Below, in pieces: positions 3,480-49,800 of a stretch of DNA of 64,000 nucleotides. Positions within the stretch are counted from its first letter, which is position 1, and the number at the start of each line of letters is the position of its first letter. The stretch lies in the NCBI GenBank assembly GCA_950097015.1, contig CATNEN010000007.1, positions 5,270,001-5,334,000 of the forward strand. The letters are read 5' to 3'. Both the position numbers and the translations under genes were made by a program. This DNA is from Macrostomum hystrix. Its lineage: Eukaryota; Animalia; Platyhelminthes. The notes beneath the pieces are model-generated. The model saw only the letters and a program-made list of their open reading frames with translations. It made no database searches and was not told where the DNA came from.

Positions 3480-3631
3480 CCTGTCTCATCCCTCCCCTGT
3501 CTCACCTCTCATCTCCCCCTGTCTCATCTCTCCCCTGTCTCACCTCTCCCCCGTCTCACCTCTCGCCCGTCTCATATATCCCCCGTCTCATCTCTCCCCC
3601 GTCTCATCTCTCCCCGACTCATCTCTCCCCT
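3480..3631. repeat. CT-rich minisatellite (TCTCATCTCTCCCCYG-like), left part, interrupted by LINE insertion
   Basis: Tandem units; the same repeat resumes at 9685-9816. Confidence 0.85.
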
Positions 3632-5848: not shown

Positions 5849-5860
5849 ACCTCTGCCTGC

Positions 5861-10893: not shown

Positions 10894-11786
10894 ATGACTT
10901 GTCAACTGCTCACGACATTCTTGCTGCTCGGCAGTCTCTTGGCCCTAGCTGCCACGTCATCTGTTCTCCGCTTCAACAGCAACCCAAGCAGCCGATGCAA
11001 CCAGTCGCCGTCTGTCTGGTGCGGCTCTGCTGACGTGGCCGAAGCCTGCGGAGTTGCCAGCCAATGCCGGGGAGATAAGCGAGTCCAGAGGGCGGCTGAC
11101 CCGGTGGAGGTGACCCTCTACATGGAGTCGCTGTGCCCCGACTGCAAGAGCTTCTTCAAGAATCAGTTCTACCCCACCTGGCTCAAGCTGAACGCCTCCG
11201 GCATCATGATTGTCGACGTAGTGCCCTTCGGCAACGCCAAGGAGACCATCAAGGGCCACCGTTGGTTATTCGAGTGCCAGCACGGACCTGCCGAGTGCGA
11301 GGGCAACCAGATTGAGACCTGCGCAGTCGGCCTACTCAACGACCAGCCGGACCGGTGGATGGCCTACCTGTCCTGCGTGGAGGACCGCTCCACCGCCGAC
11401 AACATGCTGCAGGTGGCCCAGCAGTGCGCCGGGGCGCTGAACATCAGCTTCGAACACATCAACACCTGCTCTCACAACGAGTGGGGTGACAAGCTGGAGC
11501 ACTGGATGGCGGAGAGGACCCAGACCCTCAACCCGCCGCTCACCTACGTGCCCTGGGTCACCATCAACGGGGTGAGTAGCTCACTTGATGTAGACTCATA
11601 GACTGGTACACTGGTACAAACTGGTATAGAAATGTACAATAATTTCCTTAATTATGAACCGAACAGGTGCACAATGAGGACATCCAGAAACAGGCCGAGT
11701 CCAACCTCTTGCAGCTGGTGTGTTCCACCTACAAGGGCGCCAAACCGAGCGTCTGCAACCAGGCCGCCTCGCGCTGCTACAAATGA
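10894..11786 (+). CDS. IFI30: Gamma-interferon-inducible lysosomal thiol reductase (GILT); exons 10894-11571 and 11667-11786
   Basis: Signal peptide, SapA-like Cys motif, ESLCPDC active-site CXXC, signature CQHGPAECEGNQIETC, YVPWVTING; phase-0 GT-AG intron; exon 2 VHNEDIQ...VCSTYKG...C. Confidence 0.93.
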
Positions 11787-23386: not shown

Positions 23387-24064
23387 TCAGGTCCTCTGGT
23401 CCACCTGAGCGGTCACCAGGTGCACCGACCGGCCAGTCAGCGGGCACTGGCGCCGGCTGTGCGAAATGCCAGCGAATCCTGCGACCTCCAGAGCCGCCAG
23501 GCTGTCCAGCAGGTCCGGCCGGCGCAGCTGGGCCACCAGCCGGCCTGTGAGCTGGCAGTCGGCGGCAACAACCAGGCGGCCGTCCGCACGGAGCACCCGG
23601 TAGGCTTCGGTGTAGACGCCGAGCAGCTGGTCGCGCGGCATGACGCCGACACAGTTGACGTGGGCCACCAGGTGGCAGGAGCCGGTGGCCACCGGCAGCA
23701 GGTCGTCCGCCCGGCAGCGGAACAGCCGGCAGCCGGAGGAGCCGAGTCTGGCCAGGGCCAGCTTCACCGCCGCGCTACTGGCGTCGACGCCGATCAGACG
23801 AAGCTCAGCCACCGGTCGCAGTCGGCGCAGCTCGGCGAGGGTGTAGCCGGCGCCAAAGCCCAGCTCGAGGCAGGTGGCCGGGCCAGCCGCGGGCGAGGGC
23901 AACAATTCGGCGCAGGCCTCGGCGCACAGGCGGGAGGCATGTCGCTGCTCGGAGCAGGCCCAACGAAATGCCAGCGCGGCGAAGCGGGCATCTTCAGCCG
24001 GGCAGGCATAGTTGGCCAGCAGCCAGCGGCGCAGCAGCGCTGGCAGCGAGGCCGAGAGTAGCAT
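23387..24064 (-). CDS. Class I SAM-dependent methyltransferase (single exon)
   Basis: Motif I CLELGFGAG, motif II LIGVDAS, post-II LPVATGSCHLV, EAYRVLRADGRLVV; GC-rich coding composition. Confidence 0.78.
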   Translation of the reverse strand: MLLSASLPALLRRWLLANYACPAEDARFAALAFRWACSEQRHASRLCAEACAELLPSPAAGPATCLELGFGAGYTLAELRRLRPVAELRLIGVDASSAAVKLALARLGSSGCRLFRCRADDLLPVATGSCHLVAHVNCVGVMPRDQLLGVYTEAYRVLRADGRLVVAADCQLTGRLVAQLRRPDLLDSLAALEVAGFAGISHSRRQCPLTGRSVHLVTAQVDQRT

Positions 24065-25447: not shown

Positions 25448-27590
25448 GTGGATTGGTACCTATCTTTTATAGTTTTTTATTGTCTTGAATGTTTCATTTA
25501 ATGGTTTCAATAAAATAATATAAATGCATATATATCATTTAAGGCGCGTAACATTTTTGGAGGTCGATTTCTTAGTTTATTGTCTGTTCAAGCTAAAGAA
25601 CGTAAGAACGCAGGGGTAAAACAAACGTGTAACATTCTGTAACGTTCTAGATAAGAATTTCCACACTCTTGTCTAGTTAAAATCTACAAAAGTTCAGTTT
25701 TATTGCATAATGTTGATCTATTGTTAGCAAAGAAAAGTAAATTGAATTCGTAATAAATCCGTAATGTTGAGAGCATTTTTAATGCATTTTAAAGAATAAT
25801 CTCAGATTATCTAATTTGCACCATTAAAAACGAAGTAGGTTCAATCAGTATAACTTTAGAGTAAAGTGTAATAAATGATTCTATTTCATTTTGCAACACA
25901 TAGTAATAATGAATTTCTGAGAGCGCAATGGCATACCAATGGTATAAATTTATTATCACGTACGTATAAGCGTCGTATTACACAATTATTAAATTTAGTT
26001 GTTCCATGAGTGTTTTCCGGTGGTATAGCAGTATTGAATAATAAAAAGTAGGCGAAATGATTTTGGAGCCGTGCAAATTAAAGCTAATATCAGAATTTTG
26101 TTGATTTCTTTGCAATAAGTTGTAGAAAAATACGTAATTAATTCGTGTTTTTCCGCAGTAAAACTTTCAATCAAGTACTTTTATTCTTAGCTGGTGTGAT
26201 GCGTGACAGTCACGCATGTTGATTACTTGTCTGGCTTGAATTTGCACAGCAAAAATCATGTTGCTGGTCTGCCTTTTTGTCACACCGCCTTGACCTCGTC
26301 GCTGGCTATTGGACTTTACTCCCAAAGGCCTGGACGAAGCGGTGGCATTAACTAGTTGAACACATTCCAATATAGTGTCATGTGTAGTTGTGTATATAGA
26401 TAAGCTTATCAAATGCTATACAGCAGCATGTCAACAAGCAGAAAATGAGAAATTAGCAAAAATGTGTCTGCCAAACCTGTTTATAGGGAGCTATAGCTTG
26501 CCTTACATAGGTTGATATGTAAAATTGTTTACGGTGGGGTAAACGCTCATATTTATCTGTGTAGTACACTGACCTGATTCTAATCTCTAATTTATTTTAG
26601 TGACTAATTTATTCAGAGCAAAGCAAAATTGACTGTAAATAGTGACAACATGCAAAATAAGAGCCACTTAAAAACATAATGACATTAGATGCAAATATAT
26701 TTGTAACACCAGAGCAGAGCTGTGCGTGAATTCGAGATTGGATGTTCGAGATCACGATGAAAAGTTATGTTCCACAATCTGCATTCTGCTGCACTTTCAT
26801 TGCGGTAGCAAGCCACAGGAATGCCCGAGCGTAAGATGTGGTACACGCTGCGGCCTGCGACCCAACACGACTGGCAGATGGCAGTGAGGGAGCGAGCCTG
26901 TTAGCGAAGAAAAACACAGATCAATGCGAGGGGCAAAGACCCACAGCAATGCCCTACACATCTGTCATGCAAAGGAAAGACTTTCATAGGCGCATAACCT
27001 TTTGCAAGTGCCGCGCCCAAATGCCTCGCTTGCCTAGGCCGAAATGGCACGGTCAGGCCCCGGGCTGTGGTCGCCAGCGGGTCTGTTGCGCAGTACAACT
27101 GAGAGAGAGAGAATCGGGGAAGGGCTGTGTGGGGAAGCGTTTCCGGTCAATACTTCGCGCAGGCCGGGTCCGAACCGATAGCGCCTATTGCCCGACTGTG
27201 CAGCTGGGGAGAAACCCTCTCGGCTTTGATCGCATACTGCATCTGTGCAATATCCCGGAAAGGAATCGCTTTTCCCGACGACGGAGAAGACAAGGCCGTG
27301 ATGTGAACATCTGCTGCGGCTGTACAGCACCGGAGCCATCTGAACAAGCAGCAGCTGCAGCTCCACTCCAGGCCGATGAGGTGGACGTTGGGGGTCTGGG
27401 TTGCTATTTCAATTCGGGCCACTCGCCCCAGCTGCCTTCGCTTGCCCGGCTCCCTGATCCAGCCCCACTAGCAGTCTGATCGCCACTTCCTCACTAGCTC
27501 TCAATCCTGCACTTTACACTATAGAGATCTGATCTTAGCCTTTAAAGTATTCAAACCTAGCTTTTTTTGCAAAAAATAACGATTTCAAAC

Positions 27591-30500
27591 ATGGACCCGG
27601 CAGCTCTGTAAGTGGTACTCGGATACTAGATATATCATGTTGACGATTTGACTGTTGGTTGCTACTGTTCTCAGCAGAGCAGTTTTCCTGCAGTGCTCAC
27701 CCACTGTACTTATAGGCCACAAGAGCATGGCTCAGCAGTAGGCAGCGCTTTAAAAGAGCTGCAAAATATTAGTACTTAGTATGCCATGTTGTTACGCTCC
27801 TAAATTTCTCTATGAACTGAGTCAAAGAAATTAAGCAACACAAGTGAAACAAACAAGTTGCTTGCGTCGGCAAGCAAGACATGATAGCTTTTTAGAATTT
27901 TTAGAATTTCGAATAATCAATCAACGGCCAGAACCTTTGAAAAACTCGACGGTCTGAAGGACAGGCAACTTTAGTGTTGTTTCAGAAGATGCGCAACAAA
28001 AAATAGACTAATGTTCTTAAGTCTCTTGGAAATATTTCCCTTAGTTGTTTTACTGTTAACTCGATAAGTAAGTTACGCCAAACCGGCTATTCGGGGCATT
28101 GACAAAATTTCCACAGTCGATAACAGCCGCGAAAAATCGAGAATGAGCTTTGAAATTAGAGAAGTGATTAAAGAAAGTCAAGTAACTACAATCAGTTAGC
28201 TTCTGTTTCATACTCAAGTTAACTTTGTACTCGTAGTTGCCAGTGGTGAGTTGAATTGTGATCTAGATCTAGGGCCACAAAAACTGAAACCACACACGGA
28301 AGCACTCAAACTGCTTTATTGAAATGCTCCCAGGTGCTTTATTGAAAAACAGAACAGTGACAAGTGATCTCGCATGCTTGACAAAGCCAATCCTTTGCTG
28401 AGCCGTACAAATTCTCGTGCGACTACTGAGTAAATTGTCTGTTTTTTATTGTGCAACTTTAACCCGGTTTACACCTGACAGTTTTGTTATTTAGATTCAA
28501 TTTGCCCCAAGGCCTCCAGCGAAACCTCTTTTCCTTATCTATCCATCCGTTTCGCGCGGTATTTAATCGGAGGAGGCGGTCTAGAATGCGATTTATTAAT
28601 GTACATCCAATGTACATGCGGCGTTTTTGTGTTGTGTGAACTAACCAAGGGAAGACCCAAGGTTTCAGCTCACCCGCCCTATAAAGCTTAAATCGTTTTC
28701 TCTCCGTCTCGTTCCGTTTCTCTCCGTACTGTCTGTCGTGAAAATATTCCAGCCAATTAATGTTCGGCTCGGTGGAAATAATTTTGTTCGCACACTGATT
28801 CGCCAGCAGAAACAGCCGAAAACAGAACTTTGCCAGCTGCAACTGCTGAACTCTCATTAGCCACCGTTCCACAAACCGCCCGCAGCCGTCCGAACTAAAG
28901 TCACTGAGCACCTCTCTTCCGACACTTCCAAGTTGTTTTGCTTGTTTCCACAGACCCTCGAGTCCTGTGATTCTGTTTCTGTCTACCTTAACTGCACAAC
29001 AGCCGCAAACATAGGGAACCTAGTTAAAGGCCGAGGAGGTCAGAGGTCGAGGCCGGCTGCCGCTGGGTGAGTTGTCCCGCTGAGTAGTGACTCAATATCA
29101 ATTATAGACAGTGTCTTCAGCTGCCGTGACAAGTTGCTGTTAGAAGCGAGAAGACACTGCACAATGCTTCTTTCACATGGGGTCTTGAATACAGTTTACT
29201 AAACTGCATGAAAATTTTATTGTTAAAGCATTGGTGAGAGCATGCCATTTACCTTCAACTTAGCATGGATTTCTTAGAAACAATACTTGTTGCTCATAGT
29301 TCGTACTGCTTGTTTTGCCTTTAACAACAAAATCTCACAAAGCAAAGCAAATTGGGGCAACAACCTACACTCATCTCGCATAGATGTTATTCCGAAAATA
29401 TTTAGAGATCATATAAAGAGCTTAATTCTAAAATCTCCTAGAGTCAACTTTCAACGCATCTCGCATGCGCTACTGGCAAGTAGTATATATACTCATAAAA
29501 TCAACAACCGGACGTTAAAAAGTTCCAAACAAAGGAAAGCAAAGCCGCAGTTGCCAATAAAACAGGGTGCACAATTCAAATTTGAAAATACGTTTCGCGT
29601 TACAATTATTTTGTCATTTAAAGTAGAAGTATAAAAGTGCATCCAAACAATCTTCACCACAGTGAGACCGGTGCGACCATCCAGGACATTGACCCGGAGA
29701 TAATTGCCTACCTCGAGGAAGGCTTCAGGAAACTGCAGGCCGATCCTGACTGCAAGTCTCTGCTAAAGAAGCACCTCACTGCCGAGGTGCTACAGAAGCT
29801 GAAGGGACTGAAGACTGCGACCTTTGGATCGACGCTGAAGGATGTTATCCAATCAGGTACGAGCGTGGATATGACACATGAATACATTGTAATTTCAGTC
29901 TTAACTTGACAAACGTCACAATTCGATGTGCAAACTACGCAGGTGTGGAGAACCCGGACTCCGGAGTGGGAGTGTACGCCCCTGACGCCGAGGCCTACAC
30001 GGTGTTTGAGGACCTGTTCGACCCGATCATCGAGGAGTACCACGGAGGCTTCAAGAAGACTGACAAGCACCCGCCGTGCACTCTGGGCGACGCCAGCCAG
30101 TTCGGCGACGTGGACCCGGAGGGAAAGTACGTGGTGTCGACTCGCATCCGCTGCGGCAGGTCGGTCAAGCAGTTCCCGTTCAACCCGAACATGACCGAGG
30201 AGCATTACAGGCAGCTGGAGGAGCTGGTGTCGGGCACGCTGAAGGACCTGACTGGCGAGCTGAAGGGCACCTACTACCCGCTGACCGGCATGACGAAGGA
30301 GGTGCAGCAGCAGCTGATTGACGACCACTTTTTGTTCAAGGAGGGCGACCGGTTCCTGCAGAAGGCGAACGCGTGCCGCTTCTGGCCGACCGGACGAGGC
30401 ATCTACCACAACGACAGCAAGACGTTCCTGGTGTGGGTGGGCGAGGAGGACCACATGCGCATCATCTCGATGCAGAAGGGCGGCTGCATCAGGGAGGTGT

Positions 30501-33500
30501 ACGGCCGGCTGGTGCACGCGGTGAACGAGATCGAGAAGCGCATGGAGTTCAGCCACGACGACCGTCTCGGCTTCCTCACCTTCTGTCCGTCGAACCTCGG
30601 CACCACGATCCGCGCCTCCGTGCACATCAAGCTGCCCAAGCTGGCCGCCGGAGGTCAGGACGCTCTGCAGCGAGTGGCCGACCGCTTCCAGCTGCAGGTG
30701 CGCGGCTCGGCCGGCGAGCACTCCGAGGCCGTCGGCGGTCTCTACGACATCTCGAACAAGGAGCGCATGGGCCTCACCGAGTTCGACGCAGTCAACAAGA
30801 TGAACCACGGCATCGCCGAGCTCATCCGCATGGAGAAGGAGCTCGAGCAGGGCGTCGACTCCGCGGTGGTCAGCTACGTCGAGGCCGGCTTCCACAAGCT
30901 GCAGAGCGACGACTCGTGCCACTCGCTGCTGAAGAAGCACCTCACCCAGGAGGTACTGGACAAGCTGAAGAACCTGAGCACCCCGTCGTTCGGCTCCACC
31001 CTGAAGGACGTCATCCAGTCAGGTGAGGTTTACTACTGCTTAGCATTTTTTCAGCGGGCTGTATTTTCATAATAAAATGTCTTCTGTCACCTAATGTTCT
31101 GCTACTTTTAGAATGAGTATTCGAAATGAACTGGGCTCGCTTTACATGTCCACGACGAAATTTTGGCGCTTTAACTTTGGAAGTTTTCGCCATTGAGGCA
31201 TTCGCCTGTTGGCCTACTGCTCTGATATAAAAATCCAAATATGTATTTTTTTCCTTTTCATGGCCTATCAGACGGTGCTGTTCTTTTGAACCTTTAGTAA
31301 TTGTTGTGTGGTCATGGGCTGTCCCGATTTCTCTGAAATTGTCTGCTTTTATCCGATCGGATATTCGTAACCATGCTTCGTTTATGGGATTGATATGGCA
31401 TTGACTTGATACTCTGAGTTAAATCTTGGCAAAATTTTTCCTCTTCTAGAGATTCTTGAGCTACTGTAATCTAGGACTTGGTGTTTATCTTAATTTCTTT
31501 CTGCTCAGTCCTGACTTGTCATCATATGTAATGAGTACGTGCGACGGATCGCTAAACAGGATCTCCAGAGTCGTGTTGTTTTTGCTGTTGCTAGTGCCCG
31601 GAATTGCGAGGGATCTGTCGATGTGGGTGACTTGTGGGTCACTGGTTTCCTCCACAGATCCAGGAAAGCGAGCCCAGTTGGGGTTGACGGGGAGTTAAAG
31701 AGGTCTGCGTCTTCCACGCAGCTTGCGCTGTGCCTTGTTGGCACCGGTTTCGGAGCGGTCGATTTCCGCGCCCAGAGGAGGATGAGGAGGCAAATGGCAA
31801 ATGTTGTGAAGGACGCAGGCAGAGTGCACATTAGTTATGATGGCGCAGATGTTCTCGCGGTGGCAATAAAGTTGATGAAGTTAAAAAGCGAAAGGCGGAG
31901 ATGATCAGCGCGGATGTTCCTGGCCTGTCTGACCTGTTGGGTGGCATCGTAGCATGGATGGTCAGGATCCTGCGTGCAGAGTTAGAAACGGAGCGGCAAC
32001 CATCTTTGAGTGCTGTTGAACCGGTTGGGAGAGGCATTCTCGGTGCAGTTGTGAGATGCAGAATGCTCTAGTGGCAGCCGGTGATGACCCGGAGGGTGCA
32101 GATTTCGGCAGTTCGGGGCAAGTTCCAGCTGGTGTCACTGAGATATGGTGCCCAGACTGGAGCGCGGTAGTTGGCATGAGACCTTCAAATTGCCTTGAAA
32201 TTTGCCAGCAGCGTTGAGGACGCAGGACTCAGGAAAGCCCTAAGGACGCTGTTGCTGGCGTGGATCTTGTTGGCCATGGCTTCGGTGTGCTCATGGAACT
32301 TAAGCATCAAAGATGACGCCCAGGATTTCCGGTTAGGTGAGGTTGAGAATCGAGTTTCCAGGTGTGAACAGGGAATGGGCATTTCGGAATTCATGCGTGG
32401 TAGAGGAGAACAGAGAGTCTAGATGCGGCTGATGATGGAAGAACGAGCGCAGATGTCAATGTCGATGACGCAGTGAGTCCGGAGCTAAGTCAGCGTGGAA
32501 TCAGGCGGTGACCGGGTGGCTGGTAGTGGCATTCGAGTACTGGAGGCTGATGGGAGCGGTAAGCCTGCGAGACACCGGCCTGCGTGCCTAGCCGCCGACT
32601 CACTGACTGCCTACCCACGAACAAGGACCGGTTTCAGGGTCAGATAGGAGTTATCTGGTGTTTCCAAACAATGCCGCAGCAGAGAGAGTGCCCCTGACGG
32701 TCCGGCTTGAAGCACTCGGAAGAGCGACTGTGAGTCGGCCAGCTACCTCTAAGCCACAGCATTAAAGGCCTGGGCTTTCAGGCTAGGCCTCTCAGCCGAT
32801 GCGCAAAGCGGTCTTCAACGCCCGAAAAAGTGAGGCGGCTGCCACTGCGGCTTCCACGTCTCGTGCCGCCACAGAACCTTCAGCAGAAGCAAGCCGCCGC
32901 CTCCTCCGCTGCGGGTGCCGCCAGTCCAGAGCTCAAATGTGAAATTCACATTTTTCAACGAAAGATAAATGTTTTAGCAGGAATTCACAGCAGAGAATTT
33001 GGCAACGAATGTACAAAAATCATAATTGCAATGGCCTAAAGCTTTCTGTATTTGCTATTAGTTATTAGTTCTGACTAATAGCTGTCTTGTACCCAAAAAT
33101 TCAAGGAAGCGGAATTCACTAACCTCGTTAGTGAGCACGTACGTTTTTTGAATCTGCACTTGTGTACGCTTCCTAAATGCTTCAAAATTCGAATTAGTAT
33201 AAATTTTTTTCTTGAAGGTTTGGGTGTCTGCTAGCTTCCTTTCTGGCATGCAAGCTTCGCGAACGGAACTTTTTTATCCGTTTTGATGTGATAGGCACGA
33301 AATCTATAGATTATCGATGTAATGCAACATTAGAAACAGGTGAATATTATAATAGAGAGTTAAGTCGGGGACCAATTGTTCACGCGATGCGAACTGGAAA
33401 AGTGCCACGACACTATGTAGTACCACTACACTTTTGTAATTGCCATTCATAACAAAAAAATAAAGCCTGTTATCAAACCCTTCTTTTGTCGTTATCTGTG

Positions 33501-36500
33501 CGTCGGTGAATACTTACCTGAGCATTAAGACGCTGAACTGTGAAATTGCGTCCTGGGATTCAAAGGCCTCACGTATTAGCAACATTTATTTCACGATTTG
33601 TCTGTAATCATTTAAGTACACGAGAAATTTTGTGGCTTCAACCAAGTATTCTCTCTCTCATGCACATGTAGTAATTTCGGAGGCGGGTTCAGCAGCTCCG
33701 CTCGCCAGGTGTGTTACAGGTTCGGGTACTTGGGGTTGGTAGCAGAGCGCTTCACGTGTTTGCTTCTCGCACCAAGGTCCATGAGCTCGATTACGTGACG
33801 AGGCCACACTCATTTGGGGCGCATTTTAAGCCCTCGAGGGCCTCGAAGGCACACTGGAAGTGTACACTGCCTGACGATGAGAAACTAAGGGCACATGTAC
33901 AAACCTTCGTGAGCATGGGCCAGCGTACTGTTTCTGTGTGCGTAAGTGTTCAGGAGTAAGTAGCAGAATTGCCCTCCTACCTGGCTGTGTCTAGTGGCAC
34001 CAAATAATAGACAACTGCGAGGAGACTTCTGAAATTTTTATTATTTTCAAATAAGATGAAGCTACGTCTACATCGTTCCAGGCGTGGAGAACCCGGACTC
34101 CGGAGTGGGAGTGTACGCCCCTGACGCCGAGGCCTACACGGTGTTTGCGGACCTGTTCGACCCGATCATCGAGGAGTACCACGGAGGCTTCAAGAAGACT
34201 GACAAGCACCCGCCGTGCACTCTGGGCGACGCCAGCCAGTTCGGCGACGTGGACCCGGAGGGAAAGTACGTGGTGTCGACTCGCATCCGCTGCGGCAGGT
34301 CGGTCAAGCAGTTCCCGTTCAACCCGAACATGACCGAGGAGCACTACAGGCAGCTGGAGGAGCTGGTGTCGGGCACGCTGAAGGACCTGACTGGCGAGCT
34401 GAAGGGCACCTACTACCCGCTGACCGGCATGACGAAGGAGGTGCAGCAGCAGCTGATTGACGACCACTTTTTGTTCAAGGAGGGCGACCGGTTCCTGCAG
34501 AAGGCGAACGCGTGCCGCTTCTGGCCGACCGGACGAGGCATCTACCACAACGACAGCAAGACGTTCCTGGTGTGGGTGGGCGAGGAGGACCACATGCGCA
34601 TCATCTCGATGCAGAAGGGCGGCTGCATCAGGGAGGTGTACGGCCGGCTGGTGCACGCGGTGAACGAGATCGAGAAGCGCATGGAGTTCAGCCACGACGA
34701 CCGTCTCGGCTTCCTCACCTTCTGTCCGTCGAACCTCGGCACCACGATCCGCGCCTCCGTGCACATCAAGCTGCCCAAGCTGGCCGCCGGAGGTCAGGAC
34801 GCTCTGCAGCGAGTGGCCGACCGCTTCCAGCTGCAGGTGCGCGGCTCGGCCGGCGAGCACTCCGAGGCCGTCGGCGGTCTCTACGACATCTCGAACAAGG
34901 AGCGCATGGGCCTCACCGAGTTCGACGCCGTCAACAAGATGAACCACGGCATCGCCGAGCTCATCCGCATGGAGAAGGAGCTCGAGCAGGGCGTCGACTC
35001 CGCGGTGGTCAGCTACGTCGAGGCCGGCTTCCACAAGCTGCAGAGCGACGACTCGTGCCACTCGCTGCTGAAGAAGCACCTCACCCAAGAGGTGCTGGAC
35101 AAGCTGAAGAACCTGAGCACCCCTTCGTTCGGCTCCACCCTGAAGGACGTCATCCAGTCAGGTGAGCTGCTTTCTTTTTCCTGCTTGCTTCCAATGCATT
35201 CTTTGACTTTTGTAATCTTTTGAGACAATATATTAGTCGTTTGACTGGAGCCCTTACGTTTTGAAATTATTTTAGCCTGCTTAGGAGGCTATGTAAACGT
35301 ATTTCGCATGGACTTTCTGTTACAAATCAAGTATTTTTTTGTTCCAATAGTTAAAAGTTATAGTGATACTACCATTTAAACAGCTGCTCACACATGTGCG
35401 CGAAATTGTCGTCTGAGGAGACTTGGTATTCGTCATTACTTTCTTCAATGAATCCTTAACGAAGGCCTTCGTTTTGGTCACCAGAAGACGTCCGTGTTCA
35501 CCAGGAAGACGTCGATATGGAGGCTGTGAAATTCATAAGCAGCATGGGAAGATTTGATCTTAGTCCTATCATCTGAAGTTGCTCTTTGGAAGTCGGCTGA
35601 GACAATTGAGACCTCTTTGTGCCCAATGCTAAATATATTTTAAAAGACGCAGAGGATTCAAAGGCTCCTAGTGCTCGCGTAGTTGTTGTGTCCGCGCCAC
35701 GAAGGTTCGCTTGTGGAAGCTCGTCATAACTTTGACAATATTTGCGTTTAACGACCGTGGCTTTGAAGCACATGGCCAATGAGGCACTCTCGTGAATGCT
35801 TTAGTTTGCAGCTGACAGGTTGAACGGCTAATCAGGACTCCAATATCGCATATTTCTCTTAAAGGGACGTGTTAGTTCAACGCATCGTGATACTTTTTTT
35901 CAGCTCTGCTAGCTTTAGCACTCTCAGAGCGATTCCATTTGGCCCGCAAAAGTGTCCGACTTTATTTTAGCGAGAACATGACAGACTTCAGCAGCGCTAA
36001 GCAACCATAGTTGACCTCATTCTTCTTTGACATCGCTATGTCTGGTATCGAGACGAGTTGGTTAACTTGGGAGGGCGCGCTGATGCCGCACTGGTAGCGT
36101 TCAACGAAGTTAGATTTTTTTATCTTCGATCGAGTCACAGCCGAACGAAGCATATTGTCAAGGCTTACAGCCGGTCAGTTCAATAACTGGCTCTTAAATT
36201 TTTCTTCCTGCTTAATCACTAATGGTTAAAAGCCCAAAGCCGATTTGACAAGCAGCCAATAAACGAGATCACTATTGTTATAATATGGCTCGTAGAAAAT
36301 TTGGAAAAAAATTCATCATGAGTCTACTTTGACTATAGCGCTTGTTACCTTTGATGATGGGCTCTACCACACGGCAAGTGCATTTGATTTATTTTCAATG
36401 TATGTTTATGCGACTAATTTTAAGCCGCATCACGTGTATTCTTTATGACGTGGAAGGAATTGCGGTGCCACCTGACTGTGATTATGTATACTTCCCGCTC

Positions 36501-39500
36501 GATATATATCCACCTGCTGCGGACAGTTAATTAAATTCAAGGCTTCACACTGGTTCTTTATTGTTAGGTTGCAAAAAGCTTACCGGCCATTCTTCCAGGA
36601 AGGAGTGCTTCCAGGAATTCACAAAATAATTATCCTCCAAATGTAACGCTTTCTTTACTTTTCAGAAAAAACGTCAGAAAAATAAACGCCGTTAGGACAG
36701 ACGTACGAGTATATCATTCAATAGTTTGTTGTAATTGCTCCCAAGTAGCAGTGGAAGGGTAGGTCTCCGATTGCTTGAAACTCCCAGGTCCCGACCAAAA
36801 ACATCTGCCCCGGACACCTGAGACGGAGCCCTGCACAGCGAGAGCTCACCGCTCTGGCTCACCGACGGCGAGAGTTCACCCCTCTGGGTCACCGACTATC
36901 CCAAAATGAGGATGCACGTGGACCCCTCTAAATTTTAGGGCACGTTAATTATCTTTGACTACATGCAAGCAACGACCAGGCAACAAAAAAGTATAAAATC
37001 TCAAATTATTTAAAATATGAGTACTTTAAAATTACTGAATTTTTAATTCTTTCCAGTGTGTAATTCTGTTTATGTTTTTTCGCGTAGGGTACTAAATCAG
37101 TAAAAAACGTGTGAATGCTCCTTGATATCCAGCTATAGAGATTGCCTCGAAGCATAACTTTTCGAACGTTAAATTAATCCTTGCAGGTGTGGAGAACCCG
37201 GACTCCGGAGTGGGAGTGTACGCCCCTGACGCCGAGGCCTACACGGTGTTTGCGGACCTGTTCGACCCGATCATCGGGGAGTACCACGGAGGCTTCAAGA
37301 AGACTGACAAGCACCCGCCGTGCACTCTGGGCGACGCCAGCCAGTTCGGCGACGTGGACCCGGAGGGAAAGTACGTGGTGTCGACTCGCATCCGCTGCGG
37401 CAGGTCGGTCAAGCAGTTCCCGTTCAACCCGAACATGACCGAGGAGCACTACAGGCAGCTGGAGGAGCTGGTGTCGGGCACGCTGAAGGACCTGACTGGC
37501 GAGCTGAAGGGCACCTACTACCCGCTGACCGGCATGACGAAGGAGGTGCAGCAGCAGCTGATTGACGACCACTTTTTGTTCAAGGAGGGCGACCGGTTCC
37601 TGCAGAAGGCGAACGCGTGCCGCTTCTGGCCGACCGGACGAGGCATCTACCACAACGACAGCAAGACGTTCCTGGTGTGGGTGGGCGAGGAGGACCACAT
37701 GCGCATCATCTCGATGCAGAAGGGCGGCTGCATCAGGGAGGTGTACGGCCGGCTGGTGCACGCGGTGAACGAGATCGAGAAGCGCATGGAGTTCAGCCAC
37801 GACGACCGTCTCGGCTTCCTCACCTTCTGTCCGTCGAACCTCGGCACCACGATCCGCGCCTCCGTGCACATCAAGCTGCCCAAGCTGGCCGCCGGAGGTC
37901 AGGACGCTCTGCAGCGAGTGGCCGACCGCTTCCAGCTGCAGGTGCGCGGCTCGGCCGGCGAGCACTCCGAGGCCGTCGGCGGTCTCTACGACATCTCGAA
38001 CAAGGAGCGCATGGGCCTCACCGAGTTCGACGCCGTCAACAAGATGAACCACGGCATCGCCGAGCTCATCCGCATGGAGAAGGAGCTCGAGCAGGGCGTC
38101 GACTCCGCGGTGGTCAGCTACGTCGAGGCCGGCTTCCACAAGCTGCAGAGCGACGACTCGTGCCACTCGCTGCTGAAGAAGCACCTCACCCAGGAGGTAC
38201 TGGACAAGCTGAAGAACCTGAGCACCCCGTCGTTCGGCTCCACCCTGAAGGACGTCATCCAGTCAGGTGAGTCATTCGTTCTTATTTCGTTTCTTGTGCA
38301 ATAATGAATCAGAGGCTGAGACCTGGTAGTCTATTAGTCGCTTCTTGTGAGAATTTTCGCGTGCATGAATTGTTCAGTCTCTATGCCGAGTCTTTATCCC
38401 TAATGACCAGTTTGTGCTTTTTAGACCGTCTGGTTCTCTGTAACGAAGTTGGGAGCCTTATGATTAGCGGCTAGCTGAACTTAAGACAATTAAATTAGAA
38501 GAAACAATAGTGGGGGTGAAAAAATAGGCGTAAATTTCGAAGTACAATATCCAGATAAATAATTGTGGATTGCTTGCTTTGAATTGACTCTGCTTTTTCG
38601 TGATTTAATTCACAAACAAGCGGAAGAATTTAAAGGATTAGATTGCAATTGATAATCTGGCAATTGTGAGATCATCAGCAATAATTGTATTTATTTTATA
38701 CTTTCTTATCTTTTCAGTGCATGAACTTAAAAAGCTTTTAAAAGCAAAGCAATTATTAATCAGCAACTCAAACGTAACGCAACAGCAAAGGTGCCCGAGG
38801 CCGTCCAGCATGGCGCTGTAGGGTTGGCGGGACAAGTGAACATGTGCGCCATTGTGTGCACACCAGTCAAGCTTTGGTGGCACTGTCCTGGCTTCAGGCG
38901 GGTTCAGAAATTTCGTTTCGCTAGCTAGGTGACTGGCGTGGCCGCTCTGCAGATGTGTGACGCCTCTCTTGTAGAAAGCAGCTCTTGTATGAACGTAAAC
39001 ATACGACGTTGATTTTTGCTGAATAACCTGAAAGCATCTTTAGAGATGTCTAGAGTCAATCCTCAGCCAAATTGTTGGGCACAGTCAAGGCTAGAAAAAG
39101 CTCCTTCATATAACAATAATAATAATACAATTAATAAAACATGGCCCGAAAATGGGGGGGGAAGCGACAAAACGCGCGCTTAAGGACTAGTTCGCGGACA
39201 TGTTTCACTCCGTCAGCCTGGCTCGGGGCACACGCGTCGGAGAAGAGCAGGTCGATGTAACAGGCCGATCGTCCCTGTCCGCGCCTGCGCGGTCCCTGCG
39301 TAGTCCACAGAAGCACATCCTTCAGCGGCTCAGGGCAGTAGGCTTCAGCCCTGATAACGTGCCCAGCCAGCCGCAGGCGCCGCTGTCTCAGCAGGCTGGA
39401 ACGTCAGTCGCGCTTGCTTGTACAGTGAGTCGGTCGTGTCGCTTCCAGGGCCGCGGCGGGCGCTAAACGAAGCGCGAAGCAGGGCAGCATGTGTCGCGAT

Positions 39501-42500
39501 GAGCTGCCTCTCGAGCGCCTCTGTCAGAGTCCAGGTCTCCGCATTATAGAGCAGCAAGGTCTCAACGACCGCCTGGAAGAGCTGCGACCTGGCACTGTCC
39601 GTCAGCGCTCGAAAGCAGCACCGTGCGCACTGATCGAAAGGCGGCCCAGGCCTTGCCGCACCGTCTCGCCAAATCGTCGCTCATGCCCGGCACTAGTCCG
39701 CCGATGATAAACGAACTGGCGGCACCTCGGAAGCGGGGTCCGTGGCCGCTGTCGTCACGGAGCAGAATCTCGGCCGGCAGATTGTGCGGCACCGTCAGCA
39801 CCTCGGTCTTCTGCGCGTTCACGATGAGACCGACTCGCCGCCGCCTTTGTCAGGCCATCCAGCAGCCGTTGGGCGCCTTCGAACGTCGAAGACAGCAGCG
39901 CAATGTCGTCTGCGTGGCCGAGAGCGCAGAGCCTCTTCTCGGGGTGCCGCCGGCTCGTGCGCCGACTCAGCAAGAAGCCGTCGTCCGCTGATGGCAGGCC
40001 GGTCCGGAGCACCCAGTCCATCACCAGTACGAATAGAAAAGGCGCCAGCGTGTCCCCCTGCAGCACTCCCGAGGTCGTGCTGAACAGGTCCGACAAGCCG
40101 TCTGGCGTCACTACCGCAACGATGATGTCCACGTACAGCGCCATAATGGGGGTAATCAGCTGCTGCGGCACATTGTAGGTCCAGAGCACCAGGGGCAGCG
40201 CGTCACGTACCACCGAGTCGAAAGCCCGGCATAAGTCCACGAAAAGAGCAACCAGGATTAACTGGTGGATGCGCGCTTCTTCGATGATGCGGTGGAGGGC
40301 CAGGATTTGCGTCACTGTGCCGCGGTGGGGCCGGAACCCGTTCTGTTCGTGTGGAGCCCGGCTTCTTCGGTATTCCAACGATGTGGGCAAAAGTCCACTC
40401 GTGAGGCGCAAAACCTCCTGCCAAGACGAATCGATTTCTATTACAGACTATTAGCATATTTATGTTTTTAAATTCCGTTCCAAACTTATTTACTAATTAT
40501 TGACATTCAGACATTCTACTCGATGATTACCAAGGATTACTGCTGCGACAATAACTCATAAAAAGATTCAAAGCAATATTGAAATAAAATGCATTCCAGG
40601 TGTGGAGAACCCGGACTCCGGAGTGGGAGTGTACGCCCCTGACGCCGAGGCCTACACGGTGTTTGCGGACCTGTTCGACCCGATCATCGGGGAGTACCAC
40701 GGAGGCTTCAAGAAGACTGACAAGCACCCGCCGTGCACTCTGGGCGACGCCAGCCAGTTCGGCGACGTGGACCCGGAGGGAAAGTACGTGGTGTCGACTC
40801 GCATCCGCTGCGGCAGGTCGGTCAAGCAGTTCCCGTTCAACCCGAACATGACCGAGGAGCATTACAGGCAGCTGGAGGAGCTGGTGTCGGGCACGCTGAA
40901 GGACCTGACTGGCGAGCTGAAGGGCACCTACTACCCGCTGACCGGCATGACGAAGGAGGTGCAGCAGCAGCTGATTGACGACCACTTTTTGTTCAAGGAG
41001 GGCGACCGGTTCCTGCAGAAGGCGAACGCGTGCCGCTTCTGGCCGACCGGACGAGGCATCTACCACAACGACAGCAAGACGTTCCTGGTGTGGGTGGGCG
41101 AGGAGGACCACATGCGCATCATCTCGATGCAGAAGGGCGGCTGCATCAGGGAGGTGTACGGCCGGCTGGTGCACGCGGTGAACGAGATCGAGAAGCGCAT
41201 GGAGTTCAGCCACGACGACCGTCTCGGCTTCCTCACCTTCTGTCCGTCGAACCTCGGCACCACGATCCGCGCCTCCGTGCACATCAAGCTGCCCAAGCTG
41301 GCCGCCGGAGGTCAGGACGCTCTGCAGCGAGTGGCCGACCGCTTCCAGCTGCAGGTGCGCGGCTCGGCCGGCGAGCACTCCGAGGCCGTCGGCGGTCTCT
41401 ACGACATCTCGAACAAGGAGCGCATGGGCCTCACCGAGTTCGACGCAGTCAACAAGATGAACCACGGCATCGCCGAGCTCATCCGCATGGAGAAGGAGCT
41501 CGAGCAGGGCGTCGACTCCGCGGTGGTCAGCTACGTCGAGGCCGGCTTCCACAAGCTGCAGAGCGACGACTCGTGCCACTCGCTGCTGAAGAAGCACCTC
41601 ACCCAGGAGGTACTGGACAAGCTGAAGAACCTGAGCACCCCGTCGTTCGGCTCTACCCTGAAGGACGTCATCCAGTCAGGTGAGTTGATTTCTTTTCTAA
41701 TTTACAAGCTGTCAAGAATAAATCTATTTTTTTTCCTCATGAGTTACTAATTTATTTTTGGTTCTTGAAGTTGACATTAGTATATTTTCTTTGGGAATGA
41801 TTTTTAGTGTGATTCAATTTACTTCTGCTGTTAAAATGTGATGTTGACGGGCTTATAGGCAAATTACCGCTGCTCCCCTGCACGGCAACGCTGATGTTAT
41901 TATCTATTTTTTGTTTACAAGCAGGACGCGTTTTGGAATGAGAAAGAATAACTTAATTCGACGGTCAGTAGAGCTTAAATAACATGGCTAATCACATTAC
42001 AAAATATTCACTGCACTCTTGCTTGGTGTTTAAAGAAAATTTGGGATGACCATGTTGAGGATGCTTGCCACAGAAGTCCTGAAATAAGACGGTAGACTGT
42101 GCTTTCTGGTGTCTGGCAGAGCATGCACGAAGATGAAAGACTAAATGCCCAGGCTTAGGTACTGAATAATCACGAGGATTATGGACTGAAGGAACAGGAG
42201 GATTATGGACTGAAGGAACAGGAGGATAATGTACTGAATGAACAGGAGGATAATGTACTGAATGAACAGGAGGATAATGGACTGAAGGAACAGGAGGATA
42301 TTGGACTGAATGAACAGGAGGATAATGGACTGAATGAACAGGAGGATAATGTACTGAATGAACAGGAGGATAATGGACTGAATGAACAGGAGGATAATGT
42401 ACTGAATGAACAGGAGGATAATGTACTGAATGAACAGGAGGATAATGGACTGAATGAACAGGAGGATAATGTACTGAATGAACAGGAGGATAATGGACTG

Positions 42501-43847
42501 AATGAACAGGAGGATAATGTACTGAATGAACAGGAGGATTATGGACTGAATGAACAGGAGGATAATGTACTGAATGAACAGGAGGATAATGTACTGAATG
42601 AACAGGAGGATAATGTACTGAATGAACAGGAGGATAATGGACTGAATGAACAGGAGGATAATGTAATGAATGAACAGGAGGATTATGGACTGAATGAACA
42701 GGAGGATTATGGACTGAATGAACAGGAGGATAATGGACTATATGAACAGGAGGATTATGGACTGAATGAACAGGAGGAAAATGGACTAAATGAACAGGAG
42801 GAAAATGGACTGAATGAACAAGAGAGTTATGTGGGGCAGATGGCAGAGGGCAGATGACGCATATCTTTTTTGATCAGTAATTTTTTTCTATTATTGTCTC
42901 ATGGCTATGCACTTACACAAACTCCCTCCCATATTCCAGGCGTGGAGAACCCGGACTCCGGAGTGGGAGTGTACGCCCCTGACGCCGAGGCCTACACGGT
43001 GTTTGCGGACCTGTTCGACCCGATCATCGAGGAGTACCACGGAGGCTTCAAGAAGACGGACAAGCACCCGCCGTGCACTCTGGGCGACGCCAGCCAGTTC
43101 GGCGACGTGGACCCGGAGGGAAAGTACGTGGTGTCGACTCGCATCCGCTGCGGCAGGTCGGTCAAGCAGTTCCCGTTCAACCCGAACATGACCGAGGAGC
43201 ACTACAGGCAGCTGGAGGAGCTGGTGTCGGGCACGCTGAAGGACCTGACTGGCGAGCTGAAGGGCACCTACTACCCGCTGACCGGCATGACGAAGGAGGT
43301 GCAGCAGCAGCTGATTGACGACCACTTTTTGTTCAAGGAGGGCGACCGGTTCCTGCAGAAGGCGAACGCGTGCCGCTTCTGGCCGACCGGACGAGGCATC
43401 TACCACAACGACAGCAAGACGTTCCTGGTGTGGGTGGGCGAGGAGGACCACATGCGCATCATCTCGATGCAGAAGGGCGGCTGCATCAGGGAGGTGTACG
43501 GCCGGCTGGTGCACGCGGTGAACGAGATCGAGAAGCGCATGGAGTTCAGCCACGACGACCGTCTCGGCTTCCTCACCTTCTGTCCGTCGAACCTCGGCAC
43601 CACGATCCGCGCCTCCGTGCACATCAAGCTGCCCAAGCTGGCCGCCGGAGGTCAGGACGCTCTGCAGCGAGTGGCCGACCGCTTCCAGCTGCAGGTGCGC
43701 GGCTCGGCCGGCGAGCACTCCGAGGCCGTCGGCGGTCTCTACGACATCTCGAACAAGGAGCGCATGGGCCTCACCGAGTTCGACGCCGTCAACAAGATGA
43801 ACCACGGCATCGCCGAGCTCATCCGCATGGAGAAGGAGCTCGAGTGA
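27591..43847 (+). CDS. Five-domain arginine (phosphagen) kinase, about 1812 aa; exons 27591-27607, 29663-29856, 29943-31022, 34082-35161, 37187-38266, 40600-41679, 42940-43847
   Basis: AK motifs [53 protein letters not shown]; all junctions GT-AG and frame-compatible (5439 nt total); only the last exon has a stop; the 17-nt first exon (AAACATG, GTAAGT donor) is the least certain part. Confidence 0.88.
31640..32700 (-). mobile_element. Decayed non-LTR retrotransposon fragment (Ingi/Vingi-like RT C-terminus) in AK intron; boundaries approximate
   Basis: Broken-frame motifs ILGVIFD, FHEH...[45 protein letters not shown]...LDLW. Confidence 0.6.
33732..34010 (+). mobile_element. Diverged copy of the tRNA-derived SINE
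   Basis: Colinear similarity to 218-550 (CGCACCAAGGTCC, CATTTGGGGCGCA, GTACACTGCCTGACGATGAGAAA, GCAGAATTGCC, CACCAAAT). Confidence 0.8.
39108..40409 (-). mobile_element. 5'-truncated, decayed RTE-like LINE in AK intron
   Basis: [47 protein letters not shown]; (TTA)n tail; possible degenerate TSD AAAAGCTCCTTC 39096-39107 / AAAACCTCCTGC 40410-40421. Confidence 0.82.
42170..42825. repeat. 24-bp minisatellite (ACTGAATGAACAGGAGGATAATGG)n in last AK intron
   Basis: Tandem periodicity. Confidence 0.95.
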
Positions 43848-44443
43848 AGCTCTGAACAATGTCATTTTCGCAAATTTACATTTTGAGTTCAAGACTCACT
43901 ACGTCCTGGGGGTTCTCTTTGTGTACTTCTGTTCGGAATATTTCACACGCCTGTAGCTGGAAAAGTTTTAGGAAATCCTTCCTGAGATTTGCATGCGCTG
44001 AGCTGCACCTTCAGATATTCTTTTGTTGTTCTCTGCCATATCTCTAAACATTTTGTTTACACCCTAGCTTTTGAAATTGGAGTTTCTTGAAAGATTTATT
44101 TGGATAGTTTAGCACTAATTTGGCTTCTTTTCAAATTCGAGCGCAAGTGGCACATTTTCGAGCTCCAAAGTCCACTGGGTCGATTAGACCTGTAGGCAGT
44201 TTTGAGGAGTAGATATAATATGAAACCGTGATATGAGCTCTCGTGCCGCTTGTGCCTGTGTTCATCTATCGATTGAAGAATTCTGCTTTTAAATATACCT
44301 TCCCCCACTCGCTTGGCGAAGCGGGGTGTCACCCAAACCTGACCCGCTTTTTCTCTTCTGTTTTGCTTCCCGTACCGTTCAGTGTGCGCGTTTTTGTTGC
44401 AACCAAAATTTAGCTTGTTTCTGTAGTTCTTAGTAGAAACCCC

Positions 44444-46850: not shown

Positions 46851-49800
46851 ATGTCCAGCATGTCCTTGATTAGTCGCATTCTAAAGCCTGGCGAAACAGG
46901 AGACTCATCTAAAATCGACTCAATGCCGAAGACAGCTCAAAAGCAGCAGCCCCAGCGACAACAGCAAGCTACTTCTAAGGTACTTAAAAAAGGATGTTGT
47001 GATTATCAATTGTCACCAAATGTTGTGCCAGTGCTCGAGCCCTCCTGCAATTGTTATTATATCCGGTAAAGTAACTCAACCCTTACACACAGAAACAACA
47101 GCAGCAGCAGCGCCAGTCACAGCAGTCGTCTCAGCGACTTCCCAGCGACGCCACGGACCCTCCAGACGCGTTGAAGATTGTCATCCGCGGCGACAGCAGC
47201 GTCGGCAAGTCCTGCCTGCTGGCTCGCCTGCAGGGCGGTCCCTTCATGGAGGAGTACACGCCGACTGAACGGCCGCGCTCCGCCATCGTCAACTGGAAAT
47301 GCGGCGCCAGGTCGGCCGCGCTACTGGTCTGGGATGCGGTGGACGCCGGCCGCAAACGGCAGGCTCGGTCAGGACTCAAGCTGGCAAACGACTGCGACAA
47401 CCGGAGCCCCGCCAGTGAGTCTTCGGAGGCGGTTGGCCGGATTAAAGGAGTGGATCAAGTAGACAGAGTGGGACTCGCAAGAGCTCGCGAAACAGACGGG
47501 AGGGGCAGGCGCCAATGGTACTTGGTCGCCGTGGCCGTGACTTCATAGGCAGTGGCTCAGCAGCATCTACCGGCGCAGGCGACGCTCAGGTCTGGAACAC
47601 CGGCTCGAGCTATCAGGTCTCTTGATGGCAACCTCTCAGGGTAATGCAAGTCCAGCAGCGTACAGGTCTCGCACTGTGTGTCAGCACCGCTTCCTTGCCT
47701 TATAAGAGGATCGGCTCAACGGCCGCACAGAAGACGCTGAAGGCGTTGAAGGCGCTCCTCGCAGCTGAGTTGAAGGCGCTCCTCGCAGCTGAGTTGAAGA
47801 CGCTCCTCGCAGCTGAGTTGAAGACACTCCTCGCAGCTGAGTTGAAGACGCTCCTCGCAGCTGAGTTGAAGACGCTCCTCGCAGCTGAGTTGAAGGCGCT
47901 CCTCGCAGCTGAGTTGAAGGCGCTCCTCGCAGCTGAGTTGAAGGCGCTCCTCGCAGCTGAGTTGAAGACGCTCCTCGCAGCTGAGTTGAAGACGCTCCTC
48001 GCAGCTGAGTTGAAGGCGCTCCTCGCAGCTGAGTTGAAGGCGCTCCTCGCAGCTGAGTTGAAGACGCTCCTCGCAGCTGAGTTGAAGACGCTCCTCGCAG
48101 CTGAGTTGAAGGCGCTCCTCGCAGCTGAGTTGAAGACGCTCCTCGCAGCGGAGTTGAAGACGCTCCTCGCAGCTGAGTTGAAGGCGCTCCTCGCAGCTGA
48201 GTTGAAGGCGCTCCTCGCAGCTGAGTTGAAGACGCTCCTCGCAGCGGAGTTGAAGACGCTCCTCGCAGCTGAGTTGAAGGCGCTCCTCGCAGCTGAGTTG
48301 AAGGCGCTCCTCGCAGCTGAGTTGAAGGCGCTCCTCGCAGCTGAGTTGAAGACGCTCCTCGCAGCTGAGTTGAAGACGCTCCTCGCAGCTGAGTTGAAGA
48401 CGCTCCTCGCAGCTGAGTTGAAGACACTCCTCTCAGCTGAGTTGAAGACGCTCCTCGCAGCTGAGTTGAAGACGCTCCTCGCAGCTGAGTTGAAGACGCT
48501 CCTCGCAGCTGAGTTGAAGACACTCCTCGCAGCTGAGTTGAAGGCGCTCCTCGCAGCTGAGTTGAAGGCGCTCCTCGCAGCTGAGTTGAAGGCGCTCCTC
48601 GCAGCTGAGTTGAAGACACTCCTCGCAGCTGAGTTGAAGGCGCTCCTCGCAGCTGATCACTAACCCCAACCCGGCACCCTCCTCACTGAACCGGGAATGA
48701 GCGCGTTGGGCAGTGGATGAAGTAGCTCGGATCTAAGTGGCTGGCTGGATGCAGAGCGGAAATAAATTCGGGTTTAAGGCGTCGAAATTGGGAAAAATTA
48801 AAGGACAACTAGCCCATGTCAAAAATACCGGAGCGAATTCATTAACAGGTATTTAGTAGCGGATGTAATCCTAAATATTTGAGCAGATTTAGTGCCGGAA
48901 TTGAGTTGCGTGTCGAATTTGGATTTCTGTAAGTACGGCGTACGGCGCAGTCACAGAAGTATTTAGCTCCATCGATCCACTTGCAGTCGGCGTCGGGGCT
49001 GACTTGGACGCTTCGACATCGGCCTCGGCCGCAGCCGCCTACTCCAACTGCCACGGGGCTGTGCTCATGCTGGACATGACCAAGTCCTGGACTCTGGCCT
49101 ATGTGGAGCGTGAACTGGCCAGGGCTCCCCCGGACCTCCCCCTGCTGGTACTGGCGAACCACCGGGACATGGGGCACCACCGCACCGTGACCGCCGACCA
49201 AGTCCGCATGACCATCCGGGACAGCGGCCGCCGGCTGGAGATCACGCGCTACGCCGAGTCGTCTATGCGCAACGGCTACGGACTGAAATATGTGCACCGG
49301 TTCCTTTGCCTGCCCTTTCTCTGTGCCCAACGGCTGCGGTTATTGCATCGGCTGAGCGCTAATGCCGACGATACAGCAACGGCTGTGCTGGAGCTGCAGT
49401 TAGAGGAGGAGGAGAGCCGACTTACGTCGGAGGGGTGGGTTTTGGCGATTTTTTTCTTCGTTCATAGGAAATTTAGGTAATAGTGGGCAATTTAGCCTAC
49501 TGATAGTAGCACAGAAGAAAATGTTATATTTCATTTTTTTTCTAAATCATAAAGTAAAAATCACTTTTGGCTTTAGAATAGGAAAAATTATAATTTTCTC
49601 TACTGAGAAATAAAGTTAACCATACATTTTTTACAACTGCCTGTTTGAAGAAGAAGTAGGGCAACTCTAAAATTTCCGGCTAAAATTGAAAAAATGGCAA
49701 TCTGATACATTTACTTTTCTGCTTTGATTTGCCTTTGGTACACATCTCAATCGCATCGCATTAAAATGAAAGGACAAATAACAGTACCTGAGAACAGCAG

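Follow-up and report, generated by a model that had tools for sequence, protein, structure and literature searches.

Contiguous phosphagen kinases described so far have two domains in the case of arginine kinases (AKs) and taurocyamine kinases (TKs) and three in the case of flagellar creatine kinases (CKs). For decades they have served to illustrate how genes duplicate and fuse. Their functional advantage is debated: in some of them both domains are active and cooperate, in others only one is active. A role in transporting energy along the sperm flagellum is ascribed to flagellar CKs, and the sea-urchin enzyme is N-myristoylated. Here we analyse a 64,000-nt stretch of the genome of the flatworm Macrostomum hystrix, referred to as the window (contig 7, accession CATNEN010000007.1, positions 5270001-5334000, of the 220-Mb, 42-contig assembly GCA_950097015.1). 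Positions 27591-43847 of the window are likely to be one expressed gene for a contiguous AK of five domains.

Among the two-domain precedents, the AK of Anthopleura was treated in a 1997 study and by Wang et al. 2015, both as cited in PMC11492440. Two-domain AKs of clams and two-domain TKs of trematodes (Schistosoma, Paragonimus, Clonorchis) have also been reported (PMC3018575, PMC3836730; PDB 4wo8). The trematode enzymes use taurocyamine and carry a 6-residue deletion in the guanidino-specificity region, and in two-domain enzymes of molluscs only the second domain was found to be active (PMC3018575). The literature searched, which covered few older subscription-journal papers, described no phosphagen kinase with more than three domains, and it held no study of a Macrostomum AK beyond a mention of expressed sequence tags.

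Exon structure and domain content

Open reading frame (ORF) listing and repeat finding yielded, on the + strand from 29.9 to 43.8 kb, five open frames of kinase size. Compared in 300-nt registers, the five copies have 97-100% identity, and they are spaced 4139, 3105, 3413 and 2340 nt apart. The locus was analysed exon by exon throughout, and it comprises the following pieces (UTR, untranslated region).

27591..27607, + strand: coding part of exon 1, ATG plus 14 nt, of which the last 2 nt belong to a split Leu codon; gtaagt donor
28886..29066, + strand: alternatively included exon 1b (181 nt) between exons 1 and 2, from RNA joints
29663..29856, + strand: exon 2, single-copy, encoding the N-terminal ~64 residues of domain 1 (PF02807 head, E 8e-10)
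29943..31022, + strand: repeat exon 1, encoding the rest of domain 1, the linker and the N-terminal 58 residues of domain 2
31023..34081, + strand: intron between repeat exons 1 and 2, 3059 nt, without blastn similarity to the other introns
34082..35161, + strand: repeat exon 2, encoding the rest of domain 2 and the start of domain 3
35162..37186, + strand: intron between repeat exons 2 and 3, 2025 nt, without blastn similarity to the other introns
37187..38266, + strand: repeat exon 3, encoding the rest of domain 3 and the start of domain 4
38267..40599, + strand: intron between repeat exons 3 and 4, 2333 nt, with a minus-strand reverse-transcriptase fragment inside
40600..41679, + strand: repeat exon 4, encoding the rest of domain 4 and the start of domain 5
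41680..42939, + strand: intron before the terminal exon, 1260 nt, with a 24-nt tandem array inside
42940..43847, + strand: terminal coding exon (908 nt), encoding the rest of domain 5; TGA at 43845-43847, 3'UTR downstream

All four repeat exons are exactly 1080 nt long and in phase 1 on both sides: the first 2 nt complete a Gly codon and the last nucleotide starts the next split codon. The four 359-codon repeat pieces contain no stops, and all split codons read Gly. Their acceptors consist of a polypyrimidine tract followed by ..ag, after which the exon begins G[TC]GTGGAGAA; at the donors, ATCCAGTCAG closes the exon and gtgag opens the intron. The intron behind exon 2 (29663-29856) has the donor gtacg and matches the repeat-exon ends in position and phase. 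Codon 302 is TGA in the terminal exon versus CAG in the other copies, and the sequences diverge from there. Because every unit is in phase 1 at both ends and 360 codons long, the frame runs uninterrupted through 1812 residues; summed over the pieces, the coding sequence amounts to 5439 nt and the product to 1812 residues and 202.8 kDa. An initial annotation of this DNA had anticipated this anatomy. Its four 1080-nt exons reading through without a stop are correct in coordinates, lengths and junctions. Its GTGAG donors do lie at the position and phase of the intron after 29663-29856, its claim that only the fifth exon stops agrees with the TGA at codon 302, and its estimate of ~1812 residues and ~200 kDa fits the summed pieces.

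The shared parts of the copies contain only 10 variable columns, and only two of the differences among copies change an amino acid (codon 22 E/A, codon 30 E/G). Variants that tell the repeat exons apart stand at the equivalents of 29944, 30009, 30033, 30205, 30790, 30949, 30955, 30985 and 30997. The four inter-repeat introns (1.3-3.1 kb) gave no mutual blastn match at E 1e-3, and chance is excluded as a source of the likeness because so few exon columns vary between introns that share no such similarity.

Each repeat piece opens with the final 30 positions of PF02807, continues with the whole of PF00217 (E 7e-75) and closes with the first half of the next PF02807, that is, the last ~300 residues of one kinase domain and the first ~58 of the following one. 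Across all five units PF00217 matches at E ~7e-75 with PF02807 halves on either side of the shared intron, exon 2 supplying the first head, and these two domains place the five units in the phosphagen (ATP:guanidino) kinase family. The period is 360 residues, compared with 355-357 for ordinary AKs: the C-terminal helix ends in ...MEKELE, and ~5 residues (QGVDS) later the first helix of the next domain begins, so that the almost complete lack of a linker proposed in the initial annotation holds.

The best match of the repeat unit among solved structures is the two-domain Anthopleura AK 4rf6, in an alignment that passes through domain 1, the junction and domain 2, followed by single-domain AK structures of shrimp, crab and Limulus (E 1e-153 to 1e-161; query 2-300 corresponds to chain 59-356). 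Residue numbers were read off the sequence through the offset of the shrimp AK 4bhl match, which spans those same positions. All five units contain the CPSNLGT signature with the reactive cysteine C271, inside which no column varies, and the substrate- and phosphate-binding residues R126 (in STRIRCG), E225 and R229 (EEDHMR), R280 (TIRAS), R309 (QVRGS) and E314 (GEHSE). The specificity loop, with D62, S63-G64-V65-G66 and Y68 (NPDSGVGVY), and R193 (GDRF) also stand at the expected offsets in all units, and the loop is without the deletions typical of CKs, glycocyamine kinases or TKs. We take the roles of these signature residues to be those seen in established AK structures (1BG0/1M15), with Limulus numbering for Cys271. 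From the conservation of these residues, arginine-specific catalysis is predicted for all five domains.

The mRNA would thus be a series of the short first exon, the single-copy exon 2, four interchangeable 1080-nt exons and the terminal exon, and all four repeat exons would normally be included together. Its translation would give five complete, essentially identical AKs head to tail, each of which would bind ATP/ADP and arginine/phosphoarginine independently. Such a product would be a pentavalent ATP:L-arginine phosphotransferase, a large phosphoarginine/ATP buffer that would diffuse slowly because of its size and would increase the density of catalysis locally; high valency might carry a benefit. 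Muscle, cilia or sperm, proposed in the initial annotation, may be the tissue that it serves. Adjacent domains may also affect each other, as an analogy with the two-domain AKs and the three-domain flagellar CKs suggests (PMC3018575, PMC11492440, PMC12467219).

Splicing evidence and related genes

Logan contigs of four public runs were aligned to positions 27500-31500, which hold one repeat copy; two of the runs (X1 and X3, organisms A and B) come from another study than the others (X18 and X19, organism F). Contigs of X18 and X19 match the window at 99-100% identity, and their depth is ~100-1000 in exons versus 0-6 in introns, a contrast that identifies them as RNA. Just behind the donor of repeat exon 1, in the intron 31023..34081, depth is 0 to ~2. 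Both runs contain the joints 27607>29663, from exon 1 to exon 2, and 29856>29943, from exon 2 to a repeat exon. A third joint, 31022>29943, goes back 1080 nt and occurs in X18 and X19 (side 29) as well as in X1 and X3; 6 letters of it are ambiguous, as both sites read CAG. With one copy in the reference, a splice from one repeat exon to another is expected to look like this back-joint, and the occurrence of the joint in four runs indicates that at least two units are joined in RNA. In X1 and X3 the contig with the back-joint is a 1110-nt cycle (1080 + 30), as expected from a k=31 graph that collapses a perfectly periodic message. The RNA also has a loose end at 30847, with a median length of 255 nt, whose 30 reported letters equal window positions 43845-43874: this is the expressed terminal TGA and the start of the 3'UTR.

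Copy-specific variants add detail. Contig 17 of X19 carries C at 30790 and the G/A/G/C exon end, a pattern unique to repeat exon 3, and runs into the back-joint; the donor of repeat exon 3 is therefore used. The RNA variants 30009 C and 30790 A and C match assembled copies. Of the junction reads by which the initial annotation proposed to check the gene, the repeat-exon joint was thus recovered in four runs, whereas the separate junctions could not be told apart among copies so alike: the contigs show no exon end other than the e3/e5 type, and the 29 nt past the back-joint do not distinguish the copies. The linker and next N-terminus, which belong to internal exons only, reach 68-73% of kinase-body depth, and the kinase body is covered 3.9-6.0 times as deeply as exon 2. 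These ratios suggest about 3-6 units per transcript, as a hint only, contig depth being a poor measure of gene parts.

At the 5' end, the UTR extends upstream to at least ~27446, given an RNA contig that runs 54 nt beyond 27500, and the sole ATG in 27446-27607 is the start in exon 1. Exon 1b is joined through 27607>28886 and 29065/6>29662/3 in X18 and X19, with a k-mer depth in X18 of 114 for its inclusion versus 97 for the direct joint of exons 1 and 2. Exon 1b also has an open frame leading on into exon 2, without an ATG. The end of this frame matches the alternative N-terminus MGNLFKGRGGQR... of the Macrostomum lignano model P0394, and the start-codon position of such an N-terminus reads ATA in exon 1b of the window.

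The M. hystrix genome holds two further AK genes of this kind, on contigs 1 and 34. The contig 1 paralogue (18328156-18334581) has three domains and is ~90% identical to the window gene; it consists of an N-terminal exon with an ATG of its own, two read-through exons of 1080 nt that end in G before gtgagt, and a terminal exon that ends ...EKALEAK before the stop (exons at 942-2021, 3053-4132 and 6175-7085 of the stretch 18327500-18337499). The contig 34 gene (within 2847000-2856000, minus strand) encodes a single-domain AK with the same intron position after ...DVIQSG and probably represents the ancestral form. Codons 302-359 would go untranslated if every unit stopped where its domain does. 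Between the contig 7 and contig 1 genes, however, these codons have 0.87-0.92 synonymous substitutions per site (dS) and 0.17 nonsynonymous ones (dN), a dN/dS of 0.18-0.20, next to a dS of 0.28 and a dN/dS of 0.14 in the kinase body. A ratio of ~0.19 in the linker means that the read-through frame is kept under purifying selection in both genes. In this linker and next-N-terminus part, the GC content of third codon positions (GC3) is 0.95 in the one gene versus 0.71 in the other.

The nearest proteins are AKs of M. lignano, with 84-92% identity, and insect and crustacean AKs follow with 70-72%; neither search of protein collections returned a protein from the M. hystrix gene itself. The database check proposed in the initial annotation found its five domain pairs in M. 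lignano PAA67925.1 (A0A267F2E8, P0276), a protein of 1843 aa with five PF00217/PF02807 pairs that has 92% identity with the window unit across its full 359 residues. PAA67925.1 shares with the window gene the 360-residue period, the linker EQGVD..VVSY.EAG and the N-terminus MDP..., but differs in a 34-residue internal duplication in domain 3 (residues ~875-942, motif spacing 394 instead of 360) that is probably a product of modelling or assembly. The protein was predicted automatically on a draft assembly, and the searched literature contained no paper describing it. Searches begun with a three-domain protein of a nemertean and continued with the M. lignano hit brought up further M. lignano models. 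PAA74349.1 has five domains in 1808 aa and PAA48667.1 four in 1448 aa, and older models in UniProt have six units. A model of 388 aa has one domain, which clusters with those of the five-domain gene, and the fragmentary model P0397 (<1200 aa) bears frameshift scars. Models with 1, 3, 4, 5 and 6 domains fall in one 90% cluster.

In a tree built from the 301-residue kinase bodies, the five window domains form one clade that is sister to the PAA67925.1 domains (86/85), by which PAA67925.1 is placed as the orthologue of the window gene. The three contig 1 domains are sister to those of PAA74349.1 and PAA48667.1 (89/94), a second lineage with three domains in M. hystrix versus four to five in the M. 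lignano orthologues. The two single-domain genes lie outside both multi-domain groups, without firm placement, and the contig 34 gene groups with M. lignano P0003. Domains therefore group by gene and species and not by position, and both multi-domain genes are older than the divergence of the two species.

Alternative readings and exon homogenization

That the locus is one spliced gene and not five, as the initial annotation held, is where the RNA joints, the read-through paralogue, the linker dN/dS of ~0.19 and the M. lignano orthologue agree. We also favour the five-domain form as its main product, although less firmly than the existence of the gene. Several observations weigh against this interpretation. 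Skipping any 1080-nt exon would keep the frame, and back-splicing of a single exon into a circular RNA would yield the same 31022>29943 joint. Reads and contigs each cross one junction at most, and de Bruijn assembly of short reads merges the copies into a cycle. The kinds of run are guessed in the records ('RNA?' for X1 and X3, '?' for X18 and X19). Furthermore, exon 1b is present in about half of the assembled 5' ends and brings a stop 9 codons after the only ATG, so that some transcripts may be unproductive or start elsewhere.

In-frame skipping could turn the same gene into a ladder of isoforms with one to five domains, of which the five-domain form would not be the main one. All exon combinations keep the frame, the depth-based units per transcript scatter over ~3-6, and the clustered M. 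lignano models range from one to six domains. However, all four donors and acceptors look equally strong and share the same exon-side sequence, and a linker at 68-73% of body depth puts most kinase-coding RNA in a multi-domain context; the varied M. lignano models, for their part, may reflect draft assemblies and separate loci, as the frameshift scars of P0397 illustrate. We consider such a mixture unlikely. A circular origin of the back-joint, with a linear mRNA that joins exon 2 to the terminal exon and encodes a single-domain AK, would exploit the fact that back-splices and forward splices between identical exons look alike on one reference copy. Yet the contig with this joint is 2-4 times deeper than the exon-2 contigs, the linker depth is high, and the linker is under purifying selection with its frame kept in the paralogue and in M. 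lignano, which would be pointless for a non-coding circle; this reading is thus highly improbable.

The copy number could also be an error of assembly, with the repeat expanded or collapsed and fewer or more units in the true gene. Repeats of 1 kb that are 99% identical are hard to assemble, and the M. lignano models differ in unit number. On the other hand, each copy has variants of its own and sits between unique, unrelated introns of 1.3-3.1 kb, the assembly consists of 42 contigs for 220 Mb, and the RNA variants match assembled copies. Given five different intron contexts in such an assembly, the gene is not an assembly artefact, and a wrong unit number appears equally improbable as the circle. 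Five single-domain AK genes standing separately in tandem would account for five kinase-sized open frames on one strand, but the internal units have no properly placed start codon, N-terminal exon or stop of their own, and their 3' ends encode the N-terminus of the next domain and finish at a consensus donor. RNA contigs that join units to each other refute this arrangement, whose probability we regard as negligible.

The single five-domain gene therefore remains our preferred reading, and its exons and introns differ sharply in their history. Against the contig 1 locus, the inter-repeat introns gave one short blastn match only, and two of them contain insertions of their own:

39755-40411, - strand: reverse-transcriptase fragment (PF00078, E 9e-15) in the intron between repeat exons 3 and 4
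42161-42824: 24-nt tandem array, 27.7 copies, 93% match, in the intron before the terminal exon

The exons between these unrelated introns are 99% identical, synonymous sites included, and dS among the repeat exons of the gene is 0.01. Because near-identical exons stand between unrelated introns and the domains group by gene and species, the sequences indicate continuing exon-limited gene conversion, that is, concerted evolution, and not recent amplification. The repeated exons have a GC3 of 0.93-0.95, against 0.69 for the single-copy exon 2 and 0.78 for the contig 34 gene with its single domain, a contrast that is compatible with GC-biased gene conversion. The locus would thus be a clean example of exon-restricted concerted evolution across two species.

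More tentatively, the gene may be a valency-adjustable enzyme cassette, in which identical phase-1 exons of one domain each let the domain number change in frame; we think this possible but doubtful. The number would have been altered by unequal exchange between species and paralogues (3, 4, 5 and 6 units in Macrostomum models) and possibly also by exon skipping between tissues, while gene conversion limited to exons and biased towards GC would prevent the catalytic units from diverging.

Long ORFs on the antisense strand (333-410 aa) and in the +1 frame (161-217 aa) cover every kinase exon. They were rejected as genes for want of independent support, and they follow from the very GC3-rich codon usage of the kinase exons. 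The antisense ORFs, from the ORF listing, are:

29708-30940, - strand: antisense ORF
33991-35088, - strand: antisense ORF
37174-38184, - strand: antisense ORF
40527-41597, - strand: antisense ORF
42891-43892, - strand: antisense ORF

Elsewhere in the window, four further features were recognized:

4289-9565, + strand: LINE-type (long interspersed nuclear element) retrotransposon, with an ORF2 of 1234 aa containing endonuclease, reverse transcriptase and RNase H (PF03372/PF14529/PF00078/PF00075)
10894-11601, + strand: open frame matching GILT thiol reductase, E 3e-31
23387-24064, - strand: open frame matching a class-I methyltransferase domain, E 1e-10
47644-48663, + strand: open frame weakly matching CAAP1, E 7e-8

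Comparison with known phosphagen kinases

The five-domain architecture is unpublished in the searched literature but present in databases, and the uniqueness implied by the initial annotation was overstated: public models with five to eight domains exist, the M. lignano orthologue among them. The value of the locus is therefore moderate, as its kind is known and such models already sit in public databases. Should the full 203-kDa pentamer be the form at work, no larger phosphagen kinase would have transcript support, and the pentamer would allow a direct test of whether chained domains give cooperativity or only restrict diffusion. The window gene and its one- and three-domain paralogues make up a natural series in one genome for testing valency.

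Like the protein of the window gene, the two-domain Anthopleura AK (4rf6) strings complete AK domains head to tail in one contiguous chain. It has two of them, however, with ~50% identity to the window domains, which are much closer to arthropod-type AKs (70-72%), and the window junction is 8 residues longer in the alignment. The clam AKs and trematode TKs are likewise contiguous proteins, of ~80 kDa, that arose by gene duplication and fusion, and trematodes are also flatworms; these enzymes nevertheless belong to a different lineage with ~50% identity, and the 6-residue deletion of the trematode TKs is absent from the window kinase.

The three-domain flagellar CKs of sea urchins, other deuterostomes, cnidarians and annelids resemble the window protein in carrying complete domains on a single polypeptide. 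They belong to the creatine kinase branch and have 38-42% identity to the window domains (for example, Chaetopterus Q67ER6). Unlike the N-myristoylated sea-urchin CK, the window protein begins MDPAAL... and, having no Gly at position 2, has no myristoylation signal.

Higher domain numbers appear in database models of several other lineages. They include an XP model of the sponge Dysidea avara (2136 aa, six motifs), LOC141910149 of the nemertean Tubulanus polymorphus (2656 aa, eight motifs), four-domain phosphagen kinase transcripts of dinoflagellates such as Polykrikos kofoidii, a model of the prawn Macrobrachium nipponense with three kinase units fused to ankyrin repeats and a Dpy-30 motif, and, in public collections, several ENA-derived and many anonymous five-unit models. 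The Dysidea, Tubulanus and ENA models share with the window gene at least five complete kinase units, recurring regularly every 350-370 residues; with 40-47% identity to the window domains and in other phyla, they were probably amplified independently.

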